Below, one piece after another: positions 524-15,806 of a stretch of DNA of 64,000 nt; within the stretch, counting starts at the first letter, position 1, and each line of letters begins with the position of its first letter. Origin of the DNA: Obrimoposthia wandeli (taxonomy: Eukaryota); assembly GCA_977020255.1 (NCBI GenBank), contig CDROCS010001622.1:1-64000 (forward strand), written 5' to 3'. The translations under genes and the position numbers were made by a program. Below the pieces are notes generated by a model. The model was not told the DNA's origin and made no database searches. It saw only the letters and a list, made by a program, of their open reading frames with translations.

Positions 524-859
524 ATGTCAAAAACGTATTATGATCCAACTGATTTAAGAAAATTTGGAAAAATAACAGAATGGAGTGAAAAATTAGGAGA
601 GAAATTTTTTAGTTATTATAATAGTGTATTTGAAGAAGGCGCATTAACTGCTAGAGAAAAATCATTAATAGCATTAGCAGTTGCACATACAGAGCAGTGT
701 CCGTATTGCATAGATGCATATACAAAAGATGGTTTACAGCGAGGAGTTACAAAAGAAGAAATGATGGAAGCAATACATGTTGGTGCTGCAATTAAAAGTG
801 GTGCAACGTTAGTTCATGGAGTTCAAATGATGAATAAAGTGAATAAATTAGAGATGTAG
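524..859 (+). CDS. AhpD/CMD-like peroxidase-family protein, arsenosugar-cluster associated
   Basis: REKSLIALAVA...QCPYCID CxxC motif of the CMD/AhpD fold; 1 nt upstream of the ArsS-type radical SAM gene. Confidence 0.85.
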   Translation: MSKTYYDPTDLRKFGKITEWSEKLGEKFFSYYNSVFEEGALTAREKSLIALAVAHTEQCPYCIDAYTKDGLQRGVTKEEMMEAIHVGAAIKSGATLVHGVQMMNKVNKLEM

Positions 860-860
860 C

Positions 861-1916
861 ATGAGTTTAAAATCACTTAAAAAAACAGCCAATAAATTAG
901 CAGATAGTAGTAGGCAATTAGAAATTTTATCTAATGGAGTTTTTAAAAATGGAGAGTTACCAACTTTTAAAGAATCTTTGTCTTTAACAAATCAATTTCC
1001 TATAAAGGCTAAAAAGTTAGAAATTTTACAAATCAATTTAGGGTATATGTGCAATCAGGTTTGTGCACATTGCCATGTAGATGCTGGTCCAGACAGACAA
1101 GAAATTATGTCGAAGGAAACAATGCAGCAATGTTTAAACGTGATTGAAAATACAACTGCTCACACTTTAGATTTAACAGGTGGCGCTCCTGAGATGAACC
1201 CAAATTTTGAATGGTTTGTTGAGGAAGCATCAAAAATTGGAATTAATGATTTTATTGTAAGATCTAATTTAACAATTATTACTTCAAATAAAAAATATCA
1301 CCATTTACCTGAGTTTTTTAGAAAACACAATGTACATGTGGTTTCTTCAATGCCACATTGGACAAAAGGGAAAACCGATAAACAACGAGGTGATGGGGTT
1401 TTTAATAAATCCATAAAAGCTCTTGAAATGTTAAACGAAAAAGGATATGGTTTATCTAATTCTAATTTAAGATTAGATTTAGTGTACAATCCTTCAGGTG
1501 CATTTTTACCAGGAGATCAAAAGGGTTTAGAAATAAAATTTAAAAAAGCATTAAAAGAAGATTTTAATATTGAATTTCATAATTTGTTTGCAATTACAAA
1601 TTTGCCAATAAGCAGGTTTTTAGATTATTTATTAGCTTCAGATAATTATGAAGATTATATGACAGAGTTGGTTGATGCTTATAATTCGGAAGCTGTTAAA
1701 AATGTAATGTGTACTAATACAATTTCAATTAGCTGGGATGGTTGGTTGTACGATTGTGATTTTAATCAAATGTTAAATTTAAAAGTAGATAGTAAATCAA
1801 AACATATTAGTGAGTTTAATGAAGATTTATTAAATAATAGAACCATTATTACATCTCAACATTGCTATGGATGCACGGCGGGAACTGGAAGTAGTTGTCA
1901 AGGAACAGTAGTTTAA
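861..1916 (+). CDS. arsS: Arsenosugar biosynthesis radical SAM protein ArsS (TIGR04167-like, DUF3641 C-terminus)
   Basis: CNQVCAHC (CxxxCxxC), HVDAGP, LDLTGGAPE, DCDFNQM, C-terminal HCYGCTAGTGSSCQG. Confidence 0.9.
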   Translation: MSLKSLKKTANKLADSSRQLEILSNGVFKNGELPTFKESLSLTNQFPIKAKKLEILQINLGYMCNQVCAHCHVDAGPDRQEIMSKETMQQCLNVIENTTAHTLDLTGGAPEMNPNFEWFVEEASKIGINDFIVRSNLTIITSNKKYHHLPEFFRKHNVHVVSSMPHWTKGKTDKQRGDGVFNKSIKALEMLNEKGYGLSNSNLRLDLVYNPSGAFLPGDQKGLEIKFKKALKEDFNIEFHNLFAITNLPISRFLDYLLASDNYEDYMTELVDAYNSEAVKNVMCTNTISISWDGWLYDCDFNQMLNLKVDSKSKHISEFNEDLLNNRTIITSQHCYGCTAGTGSSCQGTVV

Positions 1917-1928
1917 TTTAAAAATTGT

Positions 1929-2429
1929 ATGAAGTTTTTTGTAATTTGTTTTTTTATAATAGCCAGTCAATTTTGTAGGGCTCAAGATTCCTTAAAAATA
2001 GTTTTAGACAACTATAATGATCATAGTGTACCTTATATTATGGTGGATAACTTAGCTAAAGAGAAAGGAAATGATATTGTTTTAATTGATGCTCGTGAAA
2101 TAAATGAATATGAAGTAAGCCATATAGATAAAGCAATTTTTGTAGGTTTTGAGAAGTTTAATATTAAAAGTGTATTAAGAAATATTAAAAATAAAAATAA
2201 AAAAATTGTAGTGTATTGTTCTTTAGGGATTAGATCTGAGATTGTTGCAAAAAAAATAATAGCAGCCGGATATAAAAATGTACACAATTTATACGGAGGT
2301 ATTTTTGAGTGGAGTAATTTCAATTTTCCTTTAATTAATTCAAAAGGAATTAAAACTAAAAGAGTACATACTTTTAATAAAGCTTGGAGTAAATGGTTGG
2401 TAAAGGGAAAAGGAGTATATGAAAAATAA
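1929..2429 (+). CDS. Rhodanese-like domain protein with N-terminal signal peptide
   Basis: LIDARE, YEVSHI, VVYCSLGIRS active loop, NLYGGIFEW; hydrophobic N-terminus ending CRA-QD. Confidence 0.85.
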   Translation: MKFFVICFFIIASQFCRAQDSLKIVLDNYNDHSVPYIMVDNLAKEKGNDIVLIDAREINEYEVSHIDKAIFVGFEKFNIKSVLRNIKNKNKKIVVYCSLGIRSEIVAKKIIAAGYKNVHNLYGGIFEWSNFNFPLINSKGIKTKRVHTFNKAWSKWLVKGKGVYEK

Positions 2430-3048
2430 AAATTTAGTAATAGTTTTTACTCGAAACCCAGAATTGGGTAAGGTAAAAAGTAGATTGGCCAGTGTTATTG
2501 GTAAAACAGCCGCTCTCAATATCTACAAAATATTATTGCTGCATACTGCTAAATCAATTAAAAATTTAACGTGTGATAAAGCAATTTATTATTCAGAAAA
2601 AATTAGAACAAATGATATTTGGAATGAAAGTTATTTAAAGTATAAACAAGAAGGTGAAGATTTAGGGATAAGAATGAAAAATGCTTTTAAAAAATCTTTT
2701 GAAAAAGGATATAAAAATGTTGTTATAATTGGTAGCGATTTAATTGATTTAACCCCAGAACATATAAATATTGCTTTTGAAAAATTAATGTATAATGATG
2801 TGGTTGTAGGTTCTGCAATGGATGGTGGTTATTATTTATTAGGCTTAAAAAAAGTACATAATCAAATTTTTGAAAATAAAAAATGGGGTACTTCGAGCGT
2901 TTTGAGAGAAACCTTGAGAAATTTAAATGGTTGTGAAATTGAATTTTTACAAGAATTAAATGATATTGATACTTACGAAGATTTAAAAAATAATAAGAAA
3001 TTAAAAGAATTAATAACAAATGATTACGAAATTAAAGGAGTCAGTTAA
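2419..3048 (+). CDS. TIGR04282/DUF2064 family transferase (CofC/MobA-like fold), arsenosugar-cluster associated
   Basis: FTRNPELGKVKSRL, QEGEDLGIRM, IIGSD, DGGYYLLG, LNDID motifs. Confidence 0.88.
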   Translation: MKNKNLVIVFTRNPELGKVKSRLASVIGKTAALNIYKILLLHTAKSIKNLTCDKAIYYSEKIRTNDIWNESYLKYKQEGEDLGIRMKNAFKKSFEKGYKNVVIIGSDLIDLTPEHINIAFEKLMYNDVVVGSAMDGGYYLLGLKKVHNQIFENKKWGTSSVLRETLRNLNGCEIEFLQELNDIDTYEDLKNNKKLKELITNDYEIKGVS

Positions 3049-3832
3049 ATTCATAGAAAATAAAGGTTTTTTAAATCCTGAAATTGGGATTGTTTTAGGT
3101 ACTGGATTAGGAAAATTAATTGATGAAATAGAAATACTTAAAGAGATAACTTACACAGAAATACCTCATTTTCCTGTGGCAACTGTAGAGTTTCATAAAG
3201 GAAAATTAATTTATGGAATTTTTGAAGGTAAAAAGGTTGTTGTAATGCAAGGTAGATTTCATTTGTATGAAGGCTATAATTTACAAGAAATTACCTATCC
3301 CATACGTGTTTTAGAAAAATTAGGGATTAAGAGTCTTTTAATATCAAATGCCGCTGGGGCAATTAATTTAAATTATAATAAAGGGGAATTAATGTTAATT
3401 GATGACCATATAAATTTACAAGGAGGTTCTCCTTTGGCATTTAAAGGTGTTGAAGTACTTGGAGAGCGATTTGTTGATATGTGCGAGCCTTATAATTTAG
3501 CCATGAACAATAAATTGCTAGCAATAGCTTCAGTAAATAATATAAAACTGCACAAAGGTGTTTATGCAAGTGTAATTGGCCCACATTTAGAAACAAAATC
3601 TGAATATAGGATGTTGAAAATTCTAGGAGCAGATGCTGTTGGTATGAGTACAGTTCCCGAAATTATTGTGGCAAATCAATTAAAACTTAATGTAATTGCG
3701 ATATCTGTATTGACTGATGAATGTGATCCCGACAATTTAAACCCTGTAAATATTCCTGAAATTATTAAAATGGCAGGAATGGCAGAACCCAACTTAATAA
3801 CACTATTTAAAGAATTAACTAAAAAATTATAA
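3020..3832 (+). CDS. Purine nucleoside phosphorylase (trimeric PNP-I family)
   Basis: GIVLGTGLG, HKGKL, MQGRFHLYEG, SNAAG, DHIN, GPHLET, DAVGMSTVPE. Confidence 0.93.
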   Translation: MITKLKESVKFIENKGFLNPEIGIVLGTGLGKLIDEIEILKEITYTEIPHFPVATVEFHKGKLIYGIFEGKKVVVMQGRFHLYEGYNLQEITYPIRVLEKLGIKSLLISNAAGAINLNYNKGELMLIDDHINLQGGSPLAFKGVEVLGERFVDMCEPYNLAMNNKLLAIASVNNIKLHKGVYASVIGPHLETKSEYRMLKILGADAVGMSTVPEIIVANQLKLNVIAISVLTDECDPDNLNPVNIPEIIKMAGMAEPNLITLFKELTKKL

Positions 3833-3836
3833 TGCA

Positions 3837-4805
3837 ATGGGATATTTAGAAACTACACATAACTTGTATAAAGAGGCCGCTTTAACACCAGATGTTGGTT
3901 TGTGTTGTACTACAAACCCTATATGGGAATTACCAGGATTAAAAATTCCTAAAATAATGCAGGAAATGAATTATGGTTGTGGTAGTACTGTGCATGCACG
4001 TGATTTAACAAATAATCCAAAAATGCTTTATGTTGGCGTTGGAGGAGGCATGGAATTATTACAATTTGCATACTTTAATCGTCAAAAAAATGGAGTTGTT
4101 GGACTTGATGTTGTAGATGAAATGTTAGACGCATCTCGTAAAAATTTTAAAGAGGCTGAAAAACAAAATTCTTGGTTTAAAAGCGAGTTTGTAGATCTTA
4201 AAAAGGGCGATGCTTTAAATTTACCAGTTGAAGATAATTCAATTGATGTGGCTGCTCAAAATTGCTTGTTCAATATATTTAAAGTGGATGATTTAAAGAA
4301 AGCGATTGCTGAAATGTATAGAGTGTTAAAACCACATGGTAAACTGGTAATGAGTGATCCAACTTGTGAACAACCAATGAGTGATGAATTAAGAAACGAT
4401 GAGCGTTTAAGAGCATTATGTTTAAGTGGCAGTATACCAATTTCAAAATATGTAAAAATGCTAACGGATGCTGGTTTTGGAACTATAGAAATTAGAGCCA
4501 GAAAACCATATAGAATTTTAGATCCTAAAAATTATGCTACAGATGAATTAATTTATATTGAATCTATTGAAGTGGCTGCAATTAAAGATCCAATGCCAAT
4601 TGATGGTCCTTGTATATTCACAGGTAAAGCAGCAATTTACTACGGGGATGAAGATTATTTTGATGATAAATTAGGACATGTTTTATATAAAAATCAACCT
4701 TTAGCTATATGTGATAAAACAGCGAAAGCATTAAATAACATTAATAAAAAGGAAATATTTATATCAGATTCAACGTATCATTATGATGGTGGTGGTTGCT
4801 GTTAA
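3837..4805 (+). CDS. arsM: Arsenite S-adenosylmethionine methyltransferase ArsM (arsenosugar-cluster type)
   Basis: GLCC, NYGCGS, YVGVGGG SAM motif I, GDALNLP, AQNCLFN, LRALCLSG, C-terminal GGGCC. Confidence 0.88.
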   Translation: MGYLETTHNLYKEAALTPDVGLCCTTNPIWELPGLKIPKIMQEMNYGCGSTVHARDLTNNPKMLYVGVGGGMELLQFAYFNRQKNGVVGLDVVDEMLDASRKNFKEAEKQNSWFKSEFVDLKKGDALNLPVEDNSIDVAAQNCLFNIFKVDDLKKAIAEMYRVLKPHGKLVMSDPTCEQPMSDELRNDERLRALCLSGSIPISKYVKMLTDAGFGTIEIRARKPYRILDPKNYATDELIYIESIEVAAIKDPMPIDGPCIFTGKAAIYYGDEDYFDDKLGHVLYKNQPLAICDKTAKALNNINKKEIFISDSTYHYDGGGCC

Positions 4806-4825
4806 TTATAGATTTTATTGCTAAA

Positions 4826-5713
4826 ATGAATATTGAAAAATATATTACACTTGTAGAAAATTCTTACAAAGGCTATTGGAATTATTTGTGGCAAGAAATT
4901 TTGTTTCAAAGTAATTGGAATAATTATTTTTATGGCTTAATATTAATCTCTTTGCTTGTTTGGGGCTTAGAAATTAAATTTCCTTGGAGAAAAAATCAAC
5001 CTATTTTTAGAGATGATTTTTGGATAGATTTATTTTATATGTTTTTCAATTTCTTTTTATTAAATCTAATAGTATTAATTGCATTGTCAAATGTAGCTAC
5101 TGCTTTTTTTAATGAGTTATTGGCAATTGGAGGATGGTCAATTGCTAATTTCCAATTGGTAGAATTAAACAATTTACCTGTAGTTTTAAGATTGCTATTG
5201 TTTTTTGTAATTACAGATTTTGTTCAATGGAATATTCATAAATTATTGCATACATTCCCTTTTTTATGGAGTTTTCATAAAGTCCACCATTCTATAAAAC
5301 AAATGGGTTTTGCTGGACATTTGAGGTATCATTGGTTAGAGCCTATAGTCTATAAATCATTATTATATATTCCTTTGGCAATTATAGGTGGATTTAATGT
5401 AAATGATGTGGCTTTTATTCATTTTTTCACTTTAATTATAGGTCATTTAAATCATGCTAATTTAGGTTGGGATTATGGATTGTTTAAATATATTTTTAAC
5501 AATCCTAAAATGCATATTTGGCATCATAGCAAAAAAATCCCCAATAAATATGGTGTTAATTTTGGAATTTCTTTAAGTATTTGGGATTATATTTTTAAAA
5601 CAAATTTTATACCTAAAAGTGGTAGAGATATAGTGTTAGGTTTTGATGGGGATGAAAGTTTTCCCAAAAGTTTTATTAGTCAAGAAATTATTCCATTTAA
5701 AAAAAAGTTTTAA
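4826..5713 (+). CDS. Sterol desaturase / fatty acid hydroxylase family membrane protein
   Basis: His boxes HKLLH, HKVHH, HLNH, HIWHH and several TM segments. ATG at 4826 preferred over the track's TTG at 4796, which lies inside arsM. Confidence 0.85.
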   Translation: MNIEKYITLVENSYKGYWNYLWQEILFQSNWNNYFYGLILISLLVWGLEIKFPWRKNQPIFRDDFWIDLFYMFFNFFLLNLIVLIALSNVATAFFNELLAIGGWSIANFQLVELNNLPVVLRLLLFFVITDFVQWNIHKLLHTFPFLWSFHKVHHSIKQMGFAGHLRYHWLEPIVYKSLLYIPLAIIGGFNVNDVAFIHFFTLIIGHLNHANLGWDYGLFKYIFNNPKMHIWHHSKKIPNKYGVNFGISLSIWDYIFKTNFIPKSGRDIVLGFDGDESFPKSFISQEIIPFKKKF

Positions 5714-7222: not shown

Positions 7223-8119
7223 TTATTTTGTTAGTAAATATCTTAATCCTAAATTAAATGTTTGCCCTAATCCATTATCGCGACCTCTTACAAATTTGCC
7301 ATAAGAAACTTCTAAGTTTAGCGCATTGTTTAATTGATATTTACCCCCAAAACCAAGTAGTGAATAATTTTGTGAAAAATCATTTCCTAAATCAAGTAAT
7401 TCATAATGTTGTGCATTTACAAATACGGTAAAATTATTTGAAGGAAAATAACTTAAGAATACACTTAGCGGAACTGCTAAACTATTGTTTGCAAACCTTT
7501 CTGAGCTGTTTTCATTTGAATTTGCTTCTGTTTTTTTCTCTCCAAAGTTATAGGTGAAATCTAGTTCTGCAAAAAACTGATATTTACCGGCACCAAAAGT
7601 AGTATCGTAAAATAGTTTGTTTTCAAAAGCATAACTTCTTTTATCTAAATATAAATTAGGTTGATCTTTAAAAACCGGAATGTAAAAAGTATTTTGAATA
7701 GAAAAATTTGAAATATTTTTAAAAGGTTGTGTTTTAATACTTAACCCAATATTAGACAAGCCACTTCTAGAATCTATATTGTTATTTTTAAAAGAAAGTA
7801 CGCTAGTTGCACTTTGATCTTCAAAAGTATTGGACTTGTAATTTAAGATTAAACCTATATTTACTCTAGAGTTTTTAGATACGCCTGTATAGGTTTCTAA
7901 AGTAGTCGTAAAAAAACTACTTCTATCACCACTTATGGTTTTTCCATTATCATCGCGTTTTGTTTGGGTGTACAAATTATTAAATAATTTAAAATCCCAA
8001 TCCCCATTTTTTAATAATTTAGAAGGGGTATATTTTTGAATATTACTTTTAGTTGTTTCTTGTGAATAGGTTATTAATGAAAAAACGATGGCTACTAATG
8101 TTATTATTTTTTGTCTCAT
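7223..8119 (-). CDS. Putative outer-membrane beta-barrel protein, function unknown
   Basis: Signal peptide, alternating aromatic/hydrophobic beta-strand pattern, ends TFNLGLRYLLTK. Confidence 0.65.
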   Translation of the reverse strand: MRQKIITLVAIVFSLITYSQETTKSNIQKYTPSKLLKNGDWDFKLFNNLYTQTKRDDNGKTISGDRSSFFTTTLETYTGVSKNSRVNIGLILNYKSNTFEDQSATSVLSFKNNNIDSRSGLSNIGLSIKTQPFKNISNFSIQNTFYIPVFKDQPNLYLDKRSYAFENKLFYDTTFGAGKYQFFAELDFTYNFGEKKTEANSNENSSERFANNSLAVPLSVFLSYFPSNNFTVFVNAQHYELLDLGNDFSQNYSLLGFGGKYQLNNALNLEVSYGKFVRGRDNGLGQTFNLGLRYLLTK

Positions 8120-8147
8120 TCTGTTTATTTTTTGATTTTAGTATATA

Positions 8148-8867
8148 TTATTGTTTGTTTAATTTCCAGTTATAAGTGAAATAGGTTAATTTATAATTGT
8201 TGGGTATTTTTTCTATTCTATATTTATTTATAAAATCTATTTCTTTTGTACCATTTAGGGTGAAATCTTCTTTGTACCATTTTAATATTTCTGAACCAAT
8301 TATTCTCTTCTTTTTGATGTTAATTTTTATAAAATAATTACCATTTAAAGCAAGTTTAGTTTGTTCTTCTAGTTGAGTCTCAAGTGTGTTAGGTAAGTAT
8401 GCTTTATTTATTATTGGAGGGCAGCCAATAGCTCCGCAAACCAGTACAAAATGAAAACGTGGATCTTTAAAATTAGCTCTTAAAAAGGTGTTTTCAATAT
8501 TATTTAAGGTAGTTTTAGTTCCTCCTATATTATAAGTTATTTTATCAAAAAAACCTGATATATCTAAAGGAGAATTGGTGGGGTAATTATTTATAATACC
8601 TTTTATAACGCTTAAATTGTAAGAGTTAATCCAAAAAGCTTTGTATACAGCCATGTTGGTTTTATCAACTTTTATATTTTTTGAAAGTTCTAATAACTCA
8701 TTTAAAGAATGGGGATTCTTGTAAATTGATGCATAATCAATTTTTCCATTTGAAACATTTAAGCTGAAAAAGGTAGAAGTTTTTTCAAAAAAGGAATCTA
8801 TATTTTGAGCTTTAGATTGAGTTTGTATCGTATATATAACAAATAATGTTAAAAGGATTTTTTTCAT
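8148..8867 (-). CDS. DUF547 domain-containing exported protein
   Basis: KAFWINSYN, TLNNIE, DPRFHFVLVCGAIGCP motifs; signal peptide. Confidence 0.88.
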   Translation of the reverse strand: MKKILLTLFVIYTIQTQSKAQNIDSFFEKTSTFFSLNVSNGKIDYASIYKNPHSLNELLELSKNIKVDKTNMAVYKAFWINSYNLSVIKGIINNYPTNSPLDISGFFDKITYNIGGTKTTLNNIENTFLRANFKDPRFHFVLVCGAIGCPPIINKAYLPNTLETQLEEQTKLALNGNYFIKINIKKKRIIGSEILKWYKEDFTLNGTKEIDFINKYRIEKIPNNYKLTYFTYNWKLNKQ

Positions 8868-9027: not shown

Positions 9028-10326
9028 ATGGAACATATTGTAATTATAGGTAATGGTATTTCTGGTGTAACAGTTGCGCGTCATATTCGTAAAAAATCGG
9101 ATAAACGAATTACTATTATTTCTGCTGAATCTAAATTCTTTTTTTCAAGAACCGCTTTAATGTATGTATATATGGGACATTTAAAGTTTGAGCATACTCA
9201 GCCCTATGAAAATTGGTTTTGGGAAAAAAATAATATAGCATTAAAAGAAGGTTTGATTATAAAAGTTGAAACTGATACTAAAAAATTACTTTTAGAAAAC
9301 GGAGAAGTGCTGAATTATGACAAGTTAATTATAGCAACTGGTAGCCAACCGAATAAATTTGGATGGCCTGGTCAAGATTTAAAAGGTGTACAAGGATTAT
9401 ATAGTAAACAAGATTTAGAAAATTTAGAAAATTACGCGCCAAACAATACTATATGTAAACATGCTGTAATTGTTGGAGGTGGTTTAATAGGTATTGAACT
9501 TGCAGAAATGCTTAGAAGTAGAGCTATCGCTGTAACTTTTTTAATTCGTGAAGCTGGTTTCTGGAGGGGTGTTTTACCCAAAGAAGAAAGCGATATGATT
9601 GGTAGACATATTGAAGAACATCATATTGATATGAAACTTAGTTCAAATTTAAAAGAAATAATTTCAGATGAAAATGGAAAGGTTAAGGCTGTTGTTGTTG
9701 TAGAAACTGGAGAAACTATTCCTTGTGATTTTGTAGGGCTAACTGCCGGTGTTTCACCAAATATAAATTTTTTAAAATCATCAAATATTAATACAAATAG
9801 AGGTGTATTGGTAAATAAATTTTTAGAAACCAATATTAAAGATGTATATGCAATTGGTGATTGTGCAGAGCAGCATGTGGCAATAGGAGAAAGACGACCT
9901 GTTGAAGCTGTGTGGTATACGGGAAGAATGATGGGAGAAACTTTAGCACAAACAGTTTGTGGTAATAAATTAGAGTACAAACCTGGTAATTGGTTTAATT
10001 CAGCTAAGTTTTTAGATATTGAGTATCAAACATACGGTTGGGTTTGGCCAAATCCAAAAGAAAATGAAGAGCATTTTTACTGGGAACACGCAAAAAATAA
10101 TATATGTTTAAGATTTAATTACAATAAAATATCTAGACAGTTTTTGGGTGTAAATACCTTTGGAATTAGAATGCGACATGATGTTATGGACAATTGGCTT
10201 ACAAACCATAAATCTATAGATTATGTAATTTCTCATCTTACAGAAGCAAATTTTGATCCAGAGTTTTATAAACGTTTTGAGAAGGAGATTTCAATTTTAT
10301 TTAAAAAACAATTAGCAACGGCTTAA
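9028..10326 (+). CDS. FAD/NAD(P)H-dependent pyridine nucleotide-disulfide oxidoreductase family protein
   Basis: IIGNGISG FAD motif, ATGS, IVGGGLIGIELAE NADH motif, VYAIGDCA. Confidence 0.88.
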   Translation: MEHIVIIGNGISGVTVARHIRKKSDKRITIISAESKFFFSRTALMYVYMGHLKFEHTQPYENWFWEKNNIALKEGLIIKVETDTKKLLLENGEVLNYDKLIIATGSQPNKFGWPGQDLKGVQGLYSKQDLENLENYAPNNTICKHAVIVGGGLIGIELAEMLRSRAIAVTFLIREAGFWRGVLPKEESDMIGRHIEEHHIDMKLSSNLKEIISDENGKVKAVVVVETGETIPCDFVGLTAGVSPNINFLKSSNINTNRGVLVNKFLETNIKDVYAIGDCAEQHVAIGERRPVEAVWYTGRMMGETLAQTVCGNKLEYKPGNWFNSAKFLDIEYQTYGWVWPNPKENEEHFYWEHAKNNICLRFNYNKISRQFLGVNTFGIRMRHDVMDNWLTNHKSIDYVISHLTEANFDPEFYKRFEKEISILFKKQLATA

Positions 10327-10335
10327 ATTATAATT

Positions 10336-11748
10336 ATGAATAAAAATTCAAGTTTCTCAATTTCAAATCCACAAAAATTAAAATTAGATGCTATCCAAAA
10401 AATAGGCTTAGTGTTAGTAATGATTGGGTTATCTGTATTGGTATTAGCTTTTTTTGGAATTACCTTTAAGTACCCAACAGTTTTTTTAACTATTGCAATA
10501 AGCTTAATTTTTGGAGGTACAGTAATTTACGCTCAACAAACTTATTTATTACAACCAAAAGGTATAAAAAACAATTTTGTTTGGTTTAACACTTTATCCA
10601 ATAGAGGTGTTTTTGGTTGGTTGTTAGGTATTGTACTAACGCTGTTTTATGTATTGTTATATTGGTTTCCTAAATATTTAGGCTTTGATTCAAATGGCAT
10701 TTCTAATAGTGGTTTAGTTGCATTGTTTGATCCTTTAAGTTTATTTTTTAAAGGGAAAATAGCGAGTCAATGGTTTGTGTATGGAACATTATACACGTTA
10801 CTTATTACTTCATTAGGAATAAAATTTATTTTTAAGTATAGGCATAACCGATATCAGATAATTAGAACAATAGTAGTTATAGTTTCACAGTTATTTTTAG
10901 CCTATTTAATTCCTGAAATTTTAGAAGGGTTAAATTCAGACTTACCTTATTTTTCAAAAGACATTAAAAATATGTGGCCTTTAAACTATTACTTTTTTGA
11001 GCCTTGGCATATCGATAATATGAAAAATGGAGGAACTTTAGGTATGTTTTATTTAGTTTCAGGTATATTTATGTTCTTAGTTTTTACACCCATTATAACT
11101 TATTACGTAGGAAAACGTTGGTATTGCTCATGGATTTGTGGATGTGGAGGTTTAGCAGAAACTGCAGGGGATTCATTTCGTCAGTTATCGTCTAAAACAT
11201 TGTCATCATGGAAAATTGAACGCTGGATGATTCATATAGTTATGGTATTAGTTTTTATTGTAACCGCAGTAGTTTTATATGGGTATTTTACAAATACCGG
11301 TGAGTTTTTAGGATTAAGTATTTATAATTATTTTAGTAAACCTTATGGTTTTGTTATTGGAGCAATGTTTTCTGGAGTTGTTGGTGTAGGGTTTTACCCA
11401 ATTTTAGGAAGTCGAATTTGGTGTAGATTTGGTTGCCCTTTGGCTGGGTATATGGGGTTATTTCAACGTTTTAAATCTCGATTTAGAATAACAACAAATG
11501 GAGGTCAGTGTATTTCTTGTGGAAATTGCTCAACTTATTGTGAACAAGGGATTGATGTTAGAGCTTATGCACAAAAAGGAGAAAATATTGTTAGAGCAAG
11601 TTGTGTTGGATGTGGAATTTGTTCAGCGGTATGTCCTAGAGGTGTATTAAAACTTGAAAACGGAGAAGAAAAAGGACGTATTAATCCAACCGATGTTTTA
11701 TTAGGTAATGATGTTGATTTAATGAATTATGTGAATAAAAATAAATAA
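10336..11748 (+). CDS. Polytopic membrane 4Fe-4S protein (NapH/MauN/NosR-like)
   Basis: Many TM helices, YCSWICGCG and WCRFGCP motifs, two ferredoxin motifs CISCGNCSTYC and CVGCGICSAVC. Confidence 0.88.
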   Translation: MNKNSSFSISNPQKLKLDAIQKIGLVLVMIGLSVLVLAFFGITFKYPTVFLTIAISLIFGGTVIYAQQTYLLQPKGIKNNFVWFNTLSNRGVFGWLLGIVLTLFYVLLYWFPKYLGFDSNGISNSGLVALFDPLSLFFKGKIASQWFVYGTLYTLLITSLGIKFIFKYRHNRYQIIRTIVVIVSQLFLAYLIPEILEGLNSDLPYFSKDIKNMWPLNYYFFEPWHIDNMKNGGTLGMFYLVSGIFMFLVFTPIITYYVGKRWYCSWICGCGGLAETAGDSFRQLSSKTLSSWKIERWMIHIVMVLVFIVTAVVLYGYFTNTGEFLGLSIYNYFSKPYGFVIGAMFSGVVGVGFYPILGSRIWCRFGCPLAGYMGLFQRFKSRFRITTNGGQCISCGNCSTYCEQGIDVRAYAQKGENIVRASCVGCGICSAVCPRGVLKLENGEEKGRINPTDVLLGNDVDLMNYVNKNK

Positions 11749-11761
11749 TAATATTTATATT

Positions 11762-12259
11762 TTGAAGAAAGGAATGATTAAACAGTTTTTAATTAGAGTT
11801 TTAGTTGTGATTGGATTCCAATTTTTAGGGCTAAATTCATTTGCTCAAGATATTGAATATAAAAAAAGTTATTATAACAATGGCGTTTTAAAATCGGAGG
11901 GATGGATTGAAAATAACTTGAAAAAAGGGTATTGGAAATTTTATTATTCTAACGGTAATAAAGAAAAAGAAGGAAGATTTAAAAAAGGTTTAGAGAATAA
12001 ATATTGGTTCTATTTTAAAGACAATAAAAATAAATTAAAAGAAGGACATTTTGTTAGCGGTCAAAAAAATGATTGGTGGATTATTTATGCGACCTCTAAT
12101 TCCATTGATGAAAAAATTCAATATAAAAACAATAAAAAAAATGGCTATTGTTTGTGTTATAAAAAAAACAAATTGGTTAAAATAGAACGATTTACAAATG
12201 ATATTAAGGAAGGCGAATGGACAGATTTAAAAAAATTTAAGAAAGAAAATAAATTTTAA
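11762..12259 (+). CDS. MORN-variant repeat (YwqK-like) exported protein
   Basis: Repeated KGxWxxYYxNGxxxxEG units; signal peptide; ATG at 11774 is a possible alternative start. Confidence 0.75.
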   Translation: MKKGMIKQFLIRVLVVIGFQFLGLNSFAQDIEYKKSYYNNGVLKSEGWIENNLKKGYWKFYYSNGNKEKEGRFKKGLENKYWFYFKDNKNKLKEGHFVSGQKNDWWIIYATSNSIDEKIQYKNNKKNGYCLCYKKNKLVKIERFTNDIKEGEWTDLKKFKKENKF

Positions 12260-12945
12260 TGATAATAAAAGTTATTATACCTGCTTTTAATGAGCAAGAT
12301 TCAATTACTAATGTAATTAGTGAAATACCAAATTTAGTTAATGAGATTATTGTAGTAAATAATAACTCAACGGATGCTACAGAAAATAAAGCAAAACAAG
12401 CTGGGGCAACAGTATTAAATGAAGTTAGAAAAGGTTATGGTTATGCATGTTTAAAAGGAATTCATTATATTAATGAACAAAAAATAAAACCAGATATTGT
12501 TGTGTTTTTAGATGGAGATTATAGTGATTATCCTGAAGATTTAACGGAAATTATTGATCCTATTTCAGCTGAAAATATAGATTTTGTTATTGGATCTAGA
12601 GTAGCTCGTTTAAGAGAAAGTGGCTCTATGACTCCTCAACAAATTTTTGGCAATTGGTTAGCAACTAGTTTAATGCGTGTTATGTTTAAAGCTAATTTTA
12701 CAGATTTAGGTCCTTTTAGAGCTATAAAATATAATAAGCTAATAGCTTTAAACATGGAAGATAAAACTTATGGATGGACCGTAGAAATGCAATTAAAAGT
12801 TCTAAAAAGTAAATTGTCCTATGTAGAAGTACCCGTGAGGTATAAAAAGCGAATTGGAGTGTCTAAAGTTTCTGGTACAATACAAGGATCTGTTATGGCA
12901 GGAATTAAAATTTTAGGTTGGATTTTTAAATACAGTTTTAAATAA
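12259..12945 (+). CDS. GT2 glycosyltransferase, polyprenol-phosphate sugar synthase (DPM1-like)
   Basis: VIIPAFNE, NNSTD, GYGYACLKG, FLDGD, FVIGSR, TDLGPFRA, YGWTVEMQ, RIGVSK. Confidence 0.85.
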   Translation: MIIKVIIPAFNEQDSITNVISEIPNLVNEIIVVNNNSTDATENKAKQAGATVLNEVRKGYGYACLKGIHYINEQKIKPDIVVFLDGDYSDYPEDLTEIIDPISAENIDFVIGSRVARLRESGSMTPQQIFGNWLATSLMRVMFKANFTDLGPFRAIKYNKLIALNMEDKTYGWTVEMQLKVLKSKLSYVEVPVRYKKRIGVSKVSGTIQGSVMAGIKILGWIFKYSFK

Positions 12946-14435
12946 TGATTATAGAAACTATACTAATTGTAATTTACTCAATTTCTTTGTTGCTAATATT
13001 TTTATATGCACTAGCACAATTAAATTTATTAATTAATTACATTTCGGCAAAAAAAAATAAGGATGAGAGTCCTAAATTTGATTTTTCAAATAAAAATGAA
13101 ATTCCTTTTGTAACTATTCAACTTCCGGTATATAATGAGTTATATGTTATGGAAAGACTTTTAGAGAACATATCTAAAATAGATTATCCTAAAGATAGGT
13201 TTGAAATTCAGGTTTTAGATGATTCTACAGATGAATCTGTTTCTTTAACTTTAAAACTTATAAAAAAATTAAAAGCTTTAGGTTTAAATGTATATCATAT
13301 TACTCGAAAAGATAGAGTAGGTTTTAAAGCAGGTGCACTTAAAGAGGGATTGAATACCGCTAAAGGTGAATTTATAGCAATTTTTGATGCAGATTTTCTT
13401 CCTAAGCCAGATTGGTTAAATTGTACAATTCCATATTTTAAGGATACAAAAATTGGTGTTGTGCAAACTCGCTGGGGACATATAAATAGAAATTATTCAA
13501 TTTTAACAAAAATTCAAGCTTTTGCGTTGGATGCTCATTTTACTTTAGAACAAGTTGGGCGAAATAGTAAAGGTCATTTTATAAATTTTAATGGTACGGC
13601 CGGTGTATGGAGAAAAACATGTATAATTGATGCCGGTAATTGGGAAGGAGATACTTTAACAGAAGATTTAGATTTAAGTTATAGAGCCCAACTTAAAAAT
13701 TGGAAATTTAAGTATTTAGAGCATGTTGAAACTCCAGCAGAATTGCCTGTTGTTATCAGCGCAGCAAAAACCCAACAATTTAGATGGAATAAAGGTGGGG
13801 CTGAAAATTTTAGAAAAATGTTGCTCAAAATAATAAAGAGTGATAATATACCTCTAAAAACAAAAGTACATGGTGTTTTACATTTGTTAAATAGTACCAT
13901 GTTTTTAAATATTTTTATAGTTGCTGTTTTAAGTATTCCAATGCTTTACTTGAAAAATGAATATGCACATTTAAAAATATATTTTTATGTCATGAGTTTC
14001 TTTGTAGTTAGTACCATAATATTTTTTATTTGCTATTGGTTTATGTATAAAAGTATTTATGGAAGTAGCTTTAAAAGTTTTATAAATTACATTACCATGT
14101 TTTTTACTTTTTTTTCAATAGCAATGGGATTTTCGCTACATAATTCAATAGCAGTTTTAGAAGGTCATTTAGGAAAAAGAAGTGAATTTGTTAGAACTCC
14201 AAAATTTAATATAAATAGTTTAAAAGATTCTTGGAAAGGAAATAAATACATAAAAAACAAACTGTCTCTAAATGTGTTTATTGAAGGTTTACTAACGTTA
14301 TATTTTGCATTTGGAATGTATAGTGCTTTTATTGTAGGAGATCAGGGTGGCGATTTTGGATTATTTCCCTTTCATTTTATGTTATTTTGTGGGTTTGGCT
14401 ATGTGTTTTTGAAATCAATTACTTCTAAAATTTAA
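12945..14435 (+). CDS. Processive GT2 (cellulose synthase-like, CslA/C type) membrane glycosyltransferase
   Basis: QLPVYNE, QVLDDSTD, GFKAGAL, IFDAD, TEDLDLS, QQFRW (D,D,D,QxxRW) and C-terminal TMs. Confidence 0.9.
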   Translation: MIIETILIVIYSISLLLIFLYALAQLNLLINYISAKKNKDESPKFDFSNKNEIPFVTIQLPVYNELYVMERLLENISKIDYPKDRFEIQVLDDSTDESVSLTLKLIKKLKALGLNVYHITRKDRVGFKAGALKEGLNTAKGEFIAIFDADFLPKPDWLNCTIPYFKDTKIGVVQTRWGHINRNYSILTKIQAFALDAHFTLEQVGRNSKGHFINFNGTAGVWRKTCIIDAGNWEGDTLTEDLDLSYRAQLKNWKFKYLEHVETPAELPVVISAAKTQQFRWNKGGAENFRKMLLKIIKSDNIPLKTKVHGVLHLLNSTMFLNIFIVAVLSIPMLYLKNEYAHLKIYFYVMSFFVVSTIIFFICYWFMYKSIYGSSFKSFINYITMFFTFFSIAMGFSLHNSIAVLEGHLGKRSEFVRTPKFNINSLKDSWKGNKYIKNKLSLNVFIEGLLTLYFAFGMYSAFIVGDQGGDFGLFPFHFMLFCGFGYVFLKSITSKI

Positions 14436-14459
14436 ATTGAGTATTTATATTCATTAATA

Positions 14460-15806
14460 ATGAAAGATAGTATAAAAAATAATTACATACCGTTAATTTT
14501 AGCAGCTATAATTGGTTTTTTGTATTTACAATTTGCCTATGATTTAGAAAGAACTTCCTACGGGAAATTATTGATATTATACACTGGTTTGTTTTTATTA
14601 ACGTATAAATTAATAGAACTATCAAAAGATAATTTTAAGTTATTAGTTGTCTTTTCAATTATAATAAGACTCTTATTTTTGTTCGCTATTCCAAATTTAT
14701 CACAAGATTTTTATCGTTTTATTTGGGATGGTAGAATGATTTTGGAAGGAGTAAATCCTTATTTGTTCACTCCAGAATCTTTTATGCAGAATAATGTTTT
14801 ACCTGTTGAGCAATCAATTGAGTTGTATAATGGTATGGGAACTTTAAACGGAAGTCATTTTACAAACTATCCTCCAGTAAATCAGTTTTGTTTTATGCTT
14901 GCAAGCTTATTTAATAATAGCAGTATCTTAGGGTCTGTAATTGTTTTGAGAGTTCTTATAATTTTAGCAGATTTAGGGATTTTGTATGTTGGTTTAAAAT
15001 TGCTAAAAAGTTTAAAATTATCTAAATATAATATTTTTTTATATGCATTAAATCCATTTGTTATAATTGAACTTACTGGAAATCTTCATTTCGAAGGAAT
15101 AATGATTTTCTTTTTAATTTGGAGCATGTATCTTCTTTATCAAAATAAGTGGAAATGGGCAGCAGTACTATTTGCATTATCTGTTTCAACAAAATTAATT
15201 CCTTTAATATTTTTGCCGTTATTATTTCAAAAATTAAGATTGAAAAAAAGTATAGGTTTTTATAGTATTGTTATATTTATAAACGTGATGCTTTTTTTAC
15301 CGTTTTTCACAATAGGTTTTGTTGATAATTATTTGAAAACTGTAGGTTTATGGTTTCAAAATTTTGAATTTAATGCAAGTCTATATTATATAGCCAGAGA
15401 AATTGGATATTTATTTCGTGGTTATAATGAAATCGCTATAATTGGTAAAGTTATACCACTAATTGTGGTAATTTTTGTTGTGATAATTACATTTTTAAGA
15501 AGAAATAAATCATTTATAGAATTATTTTCAGCAATGCTTTTGGTATTGTCTTTTTATTATTTTACTGCAACAACAGTGCATCCGTGGTATATAGCCTTAC
15601 TTTTAATAATAACAATTTTTACAAAATATAGATTTCCTGTAGTTTGGAGTTTTATTATTATAGTTAGCTATTTGGCTTATGCTAGTTCTAATAATAAAGA
15701 AAATTTGTGGTTAATTGCTATTGAATATTTAGTGGTCTATGGTTATTTTGTGTACGAATTATTTATAAAAAAACACAAACTTAAAAGTAGCTTTTACTAT
15801 ATTTAA
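14460..15806 (+). CDS. GT-C fold lipid-phosphosugar-dependent transferase (GT87/DUF2029, mannosyltransferase-like)
   Basis: SQDFYRFIWDG first-loop acidic motif, NYPP, NPFVIIELTGNLHFE, HPWY, many TM helices. Confidence 0.78.
   Translation: MKDSIKNNYIPLILAAIIGFLYLQFAYDLERTSYGKLLILYTGLFLLTYKLIELSKDNFKLLVVFSIIIRLLFLFAIPNLSQDFYRFIWDGRMILEGVNPYLFTPESFMQNNVLPVEQSIELYNGMGTLNGSHFTNYPPVNQFCFMLASLFNNSSILGSVIVLRVLIILADLGILYVGLKLLKSLKLSKYNIFLYALNPFVIIELTGNLHFEGIMIFFLIWSMYLLYQNKWKWAAVLFALSVSTKLIPLIFLPLLFQKLRLKKSIGFYSIVIFINVMLFLPFFTIGFVDNYLKTVGLWFQNFEFNASLYYIAREIGYLFRGYNEIAIIGKVIPLIVVIFVVIITFLRRNKSFIELFSAMLLVLSFYYFTATTVHPWYIALLLIITIFTKYRFPVVWSFIIIVSYLAYASSNNKENLWLIAIEYLVVYGYFVYELFIKKHKLKSSFYYI

Follow-up and report, generated by a model that had tools for sequence, protein, structure and literature searches.

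A purine nucleoside phosphorylase encoded in an arsenosugar operon of marine flavobacterial type as a candidate for removing adenine from the ArsS product

Background

The presence of a purine nucleoside phosphorylase (PNP) gene (3020-3832, + strand) within an arsenosugar operon on the Obrimoposthia wandeli contig CDROCS010001622.1 raises the question of whether the encoded enzyme removes adenine from DDMAA (5'-deoxy-5'-dimethylarsinoyl-adenosine), the product of ArsS. The whole stretch that was analyzed, positions 1 to 64,000 of this contig, is referred to as the window. Arsenosugars are the main arsenic species of marine algae and make up a large part of dietary arsenic, and ArsM and ArsS carry out the only steps of their biosynthesis that have assigned enzymes in the literature found. 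In the ArsS reaction dimethylarsenite is joined to a 5'-deoxyadenosyl radical and DDMAA is formed, from which adenine is then removed. An earlier reading of this DNA, made from the letters alone and referred to here as the sequence-only reading, proposed the PNP for this removal as a step with no enzyme known to be assigned to it, and the arsenosugar-biosynthesis literature found does name none.

The reading favored here, at a probability of about 45%, is that the PNP is a DDMAA phosphorylase that arose by recruitment of a pre-adapted PNP. Its support comes from the structure of the operon and not from the active-site residues stressed in the sequence-only reading. If it is true, the next step of arsenosugar synthesis would be filled by a phosphorylase, which would free adenine, leave an activated sugar-1-phosphate and so account for the conversion of the ribose to a glycosyl donor. 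The idea is a good hypothesis that can be tested directly; what an assay of DDMAA phosphorolysis needs, both enzymes and substrates, already exists.

The PNP gene and its operon

The PNP open reading frame starts with ATG and has 270 codons, encoding a 270-aa protein. Seven same-strand genes form an operon at 524-5713 (+), and the PNP gene is number five among them. Its start is overlapped by the final 29 nt of the preceding open reading frame, which encodes a CofC-like transferase (TIGR04282/DUF2064 profile match, 2419-3048, +), and the gene for an arsenosugar-type ArsM methyltransferase (3837-4805, +; NF038099, 571.5 bits) begins 5 nt after its stop. The gene for the radical SAM protein ArsS (TIGR04167, 436.9 bits) is located at 861-1916 (+). 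Four proteins of the operon matched curated arsenosugar families (TIGR04169, TIGR04167, TIGR04282 and NF038099), which bears out the placement of the PNP in an arsenic operon by the sequence-only reading; among the curated arsenosugar models in the family search of the operon proteins, none covers the PNP itself. The PNP gene is translationally coupled inside an arsenosugar operon of marine flavobacterial type.

Profile searches, together with a structural model, identified the protein as a trimeric-type PNP (NP-I) belonging to a Leu/Asp/Ile subfamily. It matched PF01048 at 163.9 bits (cutoff 25.1) and the purine-nucleoside phosphorylase model NF006054 at 326 bits (cutoff 218), fell below the cutoff of TIGR01700 for inosine/guanosine-specific PNP I (271.5 vs 293.35 bits) and fell far below that of the MTAP model TIGR01694 (81.1 vs 274.85 bits). 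The AlphaFold2 monomer model (pLDDT 97, pTM 0.94) superposed on trimeric PNPs at TM 0.95-0.97 overall, with 0.96 for human PNP, 0.97 for bacterial trimeric PNPs and 0.96-0.97 for the Bacteroides fragilis PNP (8swt). The best matches were the PNPs of Spirosoma linguale (4lna) and Planctomyces limnophilus (4m1e), both by sequence (E 3e-87) and by structure (TM 0.96-0.97), and MTAP chains in the PDB were matched only at E 1e-12. The protein has the superfamily fold in common with MTAP and would resemble it in function only, without being a member of that family.

Conservation of the TIGR04282-PNP pair

With the window PNP as query, 14 Flavobacteriaceae genome loci were found, encoding PNPs with 66-76 percent identity; one of them, L004, belongs to the complete genome of Tamlana fucoidanivorans (CP074074). 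TIGR04282 was located directly upstream of the PNP gene in all 14, and ArsM was present in 12 of the 12 loci with enough flanking sequence downstream (or, in L014, upstream). Thus the position of the PNP between TIGR04282 and ArsM, among the arsenosugar cluster families TIGR04167, NF038099, TIGR04169 and TIGR04282, is conserved across Flavobacteriaceae, whose marine members are likely arsenosugar producers. One subclade (L006 and L008-L011) has the order rhodanese-TIGR04282-PNP-ArsM-DUF547, with neither ArsS nor TIGR04169 in the flanks examined, and a cluster representative 66 percent identical to the window PNP shows the order rhodanese-DUF2064-PNP-ArsM. In a FastTree phylogeny the operon-linked PNPs grouped in a single clade (22 rows, local support 99 percent).

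A metagenome scan with an ArsS alignment yielded 80 loci and returned only relatives that were 75-79 percent identical. A downstream flank of 3.5 kb or more was available for 47 of the ArsS loci, and 43 of these contained the TIGR04282-PNP pair; TIGR04282 preceded the PNP gene in every one of the 52 loci containing both. This order was constant while the neighbors moved: ArsM followed either the PNP or ArsS, DUF547 switched sides, and the rhodanese and hydroxylase genes were variably present around the pair. Six of the 52 pairs (L048, L061, L074, L078, L094 and L103) had an insert of 570-840 nt between the two genes. In L078 and L094 the product of the insert is a small protein bearing a type IX secretion C-terminal sorting domain, to which a DM13 domain is added in L094.

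Four metagenome ArsS loci (L091, L102, L112 and L115) had no PNP gene, and some of these had no ArsM either. At least two of them (L102 and L115) encode beside ArsS a second, divergent DUF2064 protein, with 34 percent identity and about 92 bits to TIGR04282. In L115 the product of a gene located two genes upstream of ArsS (7413-8573) combines an HD domain and a Pycsar effector transmembrane domain (PF18967). Both the subclade without ArsS nearby and the PNP-less ArsS loci indicate that the PNP is tied most closely to TIGR04282 and not to ArsS. The sequence-only reading had asked whether the clade with these active-site residues tracks arsS. A single Flavobacteriaceae clade does travel with TIGR04282 and ArsM; the residues themselves do not track arsenic genes, and ArsS is missing near some clade members, as described below. 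The link between the PNP and arsenic genes is real and is probably the result of one ancestral event in Flavobacteriaceae.

Active-site residues of the PNP

Gapless HMMER alignments to solved PNPs placed Asp233 (codon 3716-3718, +) at the position of human Asn243, where the Clostridium perfringens PNP (8swu) has Asn (TN...NHEEV) and 8swt has Asp (TD...SHEEV). Ile245 (codon 3752-3754, +) was placed at the position of human His257, in the His column of the NHEEV and SHEEV motifs, and Glu191 (codon 3590-3592) was placed at that of Glu201. The by-eye alignment of the sequence-only reading had given these three correspondences, and the coordinates of the two substituted codons, exactly; proper alignment put Ile245, and no His, in the 257 column. 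It had missed a further change, Leu190, which together with Glu191 occupies 3587-3592 (+) and stands at the site of human Phe200. The human residue numbers used here are consistent with the mutants named in the titles of PDB entries (H257G/F/D and F159Y).

The remaining catalytic positions are canonical (T28, H59, R79, H81, Y83, A111, A112, G113, M209, S210 and T232). The residues of the phosphate and ribose sites are present, namely T28 at the position of human Ser33, H59, R79, H81, Y83, M209, S210 (an invariant column) and E191, and Phe151 is conserved at the column of human Phe159. Therefore the window PNP shares with the trimeric PNPs (human, 8swt and 8swu) not only the fold but also Thr/Ser33, His64, Arg84, His86, Tyr88, Met219, Ser220, Glu201 and Phe159 in human numbering, and it differs from them in Asn243 to Asp, His257 to Ile and Phe200 to Leu. 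The B. fragilis enzyme has the Asp like the window PNP but retains the His and the Phe. Of the 120 closest homologues, nearly all kept the motif TDEC(D/N)P...Ile, and positions 190/233/236/245 were Leu-Asp-(Asp/Asn)-Ile in all 46 scorable metagenome copies, indicating that the residues in the window are not due to chance.

As judged from these alignments, the base site of the window PNP should favor adenine, and its ribose 5' pocket is predicted to be without the histidine that binds the 5'-hydroxyl. The Asp at the Asn243 site and the loss of His257 and Phe200 appear to fit an adenosine with a group other than hydroxyl at the 5' position. The acidic base-site residue and the absence of the 5'-OH-binding histidine would make the PNP a reasonable DDMAA catalyst. 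In MTAP the adenine-binding position is occupied by an acidic residue, and aliphatic residues stand in place of this histidine of PNP.

Such MTAP-like features (the base-site Asp and the aliphatic residue at the His257 position), along with the radical SAM gene in the same operon, also agree with an alternative in which the PNP disposes of 5'-deoxyadenosine that uncoupled ArsS turnover releases, or of further 5'-modified adenosines like methylthioadenosine, protecting the radical SAM enzyme and recycling adenine without acting on DDMAA. This by-product salvage is improbable. The productive ArsS reaction keeps the deoxyadenosyl group in its product and does not release it, and the protein is not of the MTAP family (81 bits vs 274.85). 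Moreover, salvage leaves unexplained both the tight coupling to TIGR04282 instead of ArsS and the ArsS-distant subclade in which TIGR04282, PNP and ArsM still stand together.

Among 160 full-length relatives, consisting of the nearest representatives of 50-percent clusters and the locus proteins, 67 had Leu190 and one of Ile, Leu, Val or Met at position 245, and five had Leu190 and His245; Tyr or Phe190 was paired with His245 in 55 sequences and with an aliphatic residue in four. This covariation assigns the window PNP to a large subfamily with Leu, Asp or Asn, and an aliphatic residue at these sites. In the tree the window PNP grouped with the Leu/Asp/aliphatic sequences, and 4lna and 4m1e are solved structures that have the same triad.

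The cleanest clade-specific change is located elsewhere, at residues 141-143, where Phe-Lys-Gly replaces Gly-x-Asn (residues 140-144, Ala-Phe-Lys-Gly-Val, 3437-3451, +). It emerged from a comparison of three sets (136 members of the clade, 30 Leu/Asp/aliphatic PNPs from outside the operon and 48 PNPs of the canonical type), after which the nearest outgroups were checked. Phe141 was present in 135 of the 136 clade members, and Gly141 in 28 of the 30 non-operon and 45 of the 48 canonical PNPs. Compared with 4lna and 4m1e, which share its triad, the window clade thus adds Phe141-Lys142-Gly143 and the location in an arsenosugar operon. The loop leads to Phe151, the counterpart of Phe159, which in trimeric PNPs projects into the ribose pocket of the adjacent subunit. 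The Phe-Lys-Gly sequence suggests a change beyond the housekeeping form, with lineage as a confounder. Another residue, Phe58 next to the phosphate-site His, was also considered as clade-specific and was rejected, as it occurs in Lacihabitans and Latescibacterota PNPs without nearby arsenic genes.

Related PNPs outside the arsenosugar operon

Several observations weigh against the PNP being a DDMAA phosphorylase, and the first concerns how widely its active-site triad occurs. In a scan of genome contigs, 19 loci with PNPs of 45-57 percent identity had no ArsS, ArsM, TIGR04282 or TIGR04169 within 10 kb, and in 17 of these 19 the PNP has the Leu/Asp/(Ile or Leu) triad. The loci come from Kapabacteria, Chlorobiota, Aerophobetes, Ignavibacteria, Latescibacterota, Lacihabitans, Omnitrophota and others, and are flanked by housekeeping genes (upstream YggS, DivIVA and ribosomal protein L13; downstream IleRS and DksA). 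The triad is therefore normal in a housekeeping PNP subfamily and is not specific to arsenic; it predates the operon. The sequence-only reading had regarded Ile245 as the more diagnostic change, a view that does not hold: the residue is the norm of a subfamily that includes the triad-bearing 4lna and 4m1e and is found in housekeeping neighborhoods of other phyla, and it is no marker of arsenic chemistry. A literature search found no kinetics for Leu/Asp/aliphatic PNPs, including 4lna and 4m1e. In addition, the dimethylarsinoyl oxygen is polar, at odds with the hydrophobic pocket that is predicted for the enzyme.

The genomic distribution contributes further points on the same side. ArsS was absent from the 10-kb flanks in five of the 14 Flavobacteriaceae genome loci, and all operon-linked copies belong to a single clade, so that their co-occurrence with arsenic genes amounts to a single event, which inherited synteny could explain. 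The only adjacency of PNP and DUF2064 outside Flavobacteriaceae was found in two loci (L035 5770-6983 and L036 2210-3423), in which the gene for a PNP 49 percent identical to that of the window overlaps by 4 nt a truncated DUF2064 gene, whose 137-aa product corresponds to the C-terminal half of the TIGR04282 model only. This pair is flanked by SerRS and glutamate dehydrogenase genes, and no ArsS, ArsM or other arsenic genes were present on the 14.5-kb contig. It may be a decayed cluster, and the persistence of the PNP beside a truncated DUF2064 suggests that the PNP is retained in its own right as the cluster decays.

These findings give substance to the alternative that an ordinary housekeeping PNP landed beside TIGR04282 in a flavobacterial ancestor and has been inherited there with no specific role in arsenic metabolism. 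The triad shared with PNPs in YggS-DivIVA-PNP-IleRS-DksA-LspA contexts of other phyla, the single clade, the related PNP retained beside a decayed DUF2064 without ArsS and ArsM, and a score above the general PNP cutoff (NF006054) all agree with it. Three other observations argue in the opposite direction: the PNP gene is inside the operon and overlaps the gene upstream; the order of TIGR04282 and PNP has outlasted rearrangements, as well as insertion between the two genes in six loci; and a Gly that is nearly invariant across the family has been replaced by Phe, which is fixed in the clade. On balance this alternative, the main competitor of the DDMAA reading, is somewhat unlikely, though it deserves serious weight.

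The housekeeping context itself recurs. The YggS-DivIVA-PNP-IleRS-DksA-LspA string was found, whole or in part, in Rhodothermales, Kapabacteria, Latescibacterota and Ignavibacteria (L125-L127, L015, L017, L021, L027 and L031), and it links the Leu/Asp/aliphatic PNP subfamily to cell-division and housekeeping genes. The Rhodothermales PNP in this context has a CDPD motif. This motif, which follows Asp233, was considered as a mark of arsenic-linked PNPs and was rejected, since four such proteins were found outside the clade on contigs, in part short, that contain no arsenic genes, and one of the four lies in a DivIVA-PNP-IleRS context. In Ignavibacteria a second, divergent PNP-like gene directly follows the Leu/Asp/Leu PNP (L027 10690-11529, L028 6149-6988 and L031 7391-8218). 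Its product has Arg at the Asn243 column and scores 178-184 bits, below the PNP cutoff, and in L031 the phosphate-site His-Arg-His is changed to Ser-Phe-Asn. This tandem paralogue was examined as a possible canonical partner PNP and, being a divergent copy with Arg at that column, was not informative.

4lna and 4m1e are structural-genomics entries. In the literature found, 4m1e appears only as a modeling template for an Aneurinibacillus PNP with weak adenosine activity. That enzyme is of the Asn type and falls outside the Leu/Asp/aliphatic subfamily, and its data were not adopted as kinetics for the subfamily of the window PNP. The specificity of this large PNP subfamily, which is structurally solved and biochemically unstudied, is worth measuring.

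Gene fusions provide supporting context for the DDMAA reading. No fusions of PNP to DUF2064 or ArsM were present among the long PNP homologues, and the fusions that were seen joined PNP to DeoC, to DeoB (Metalloenzyme domain) or to an MnmE-type protein. All of these PNPs are of the canonical Asn/His type, with Tyr/Phe-Asn-His in the DeoB and DeoC fusions; hence DeoB and DeoC, which need sugars with a free 5'-OH, are fused only to canonical PNPs.

Proposed role of the PNP

In the mechanism proposed here, a PNP with Leu200, Asp243 and an aliphatic residue at 257 (human numbering) would have been pre-adapted and would have joined the arsenosugar operon in an ancestor of marine Flavobacteriaceae, directly after TIGR04282. 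ArsM would produce dimethylarsenite, and ArsS would add the 5'-deoxyadenosyl group to form DDMAA. The PNP would then use phosphate to convert DDMAA to adenine and 5-deoxy-5-dimethylarsinoyl-alpha-ribose-1-phosphate, and TIGR04282, which has a nucleotidyltransferase fold, would activate the dimethylarsinoyl-ribose-1-phosphate for transfer to an acceptor. An alpha-ribose-1-phosphate is the kind of substrate that a CofC-like protein with this fold could activate. Starting from the residues, fold, operon structure and operon conservation, all of which the analysis shows, we infer the substrate preference, the turnover of DDMAA and the hand-over to TIGR04282. The PNP may also remain the general PNP of the cell.

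A fuller version, in which the operon would provide a complete route from DDMAA to arsenosugars, is doubtful. In it, PNP phosphorolysis would be followed by conversion to a nucleotide sugar by TIGR04282 and by the action of an inverting GT2 transferase that yields the natural beta-ribosides, and the Phe141-Lys142-Gly143 loop of the neighboring subunit would form the dimethylarsinoyl pocket.

Other genes of the operon and the downstream region

The operon begins with a gene for a peroxidase-like protein of the CMD family (TIGR04169 profile match, 524-859, +) and ends with a gene of the fatty-acid-hydroxylase family (profile match, 4796-5713, +). Between ArsS and TIGR04282 is a gene for a rhodanese-domain protein with a hydrophobic N-terminus (1929-2429, +; NF045521). 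This protein has a hydrophobic, signal-like N-terminal segment and a Cys-x4-Arg active-site loop, and the signal-like segment indicates that it may act outside the cytoplasm, unlike the other operon proteins.

The family search of the operon proteins revealed no arsenate reductase gene, a result in keeping with another possible function of the PNP, arsenolysis, in which arsenate replaces phosphate to give an unstable ribose-1-arsenate that is reduced by thiols, supplying arsenite to ArsM in an operon without ArsC. Mammalian PNP reduces arsenate in a thiol-dependent manner in vitro, according to work cited in a review that itself calls the in vivo occurrence of this reaction unknown. Arsenolysis leaves the base-site and 5'-pocket features and the link to TIGR04282 all unexplained, and it is extremely improbable. 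The six-residue loop of the rhodanese is Cys-x4-Arg, unlike the Cys-x5-Arg loop of Acr2-type arsenate reductases.

Among the proteins encoded further downstream in the window (9028-15806), no match to TIGR04283 was seen. Two GT2 genes are located in this region, about 7 kb downstream, one encoding a 228-aa protein similar to polyprenyl-phosphate-sugar synthases and the other a 496-aa protein similar to cellulose synthase and MftF. The two proteins are candidate transferases for the arsenosugar donor. The same region also encodes a pyridine-nucleotide-disulfide oxidoreductase and a NapH-like ferredoxin membrane protein.

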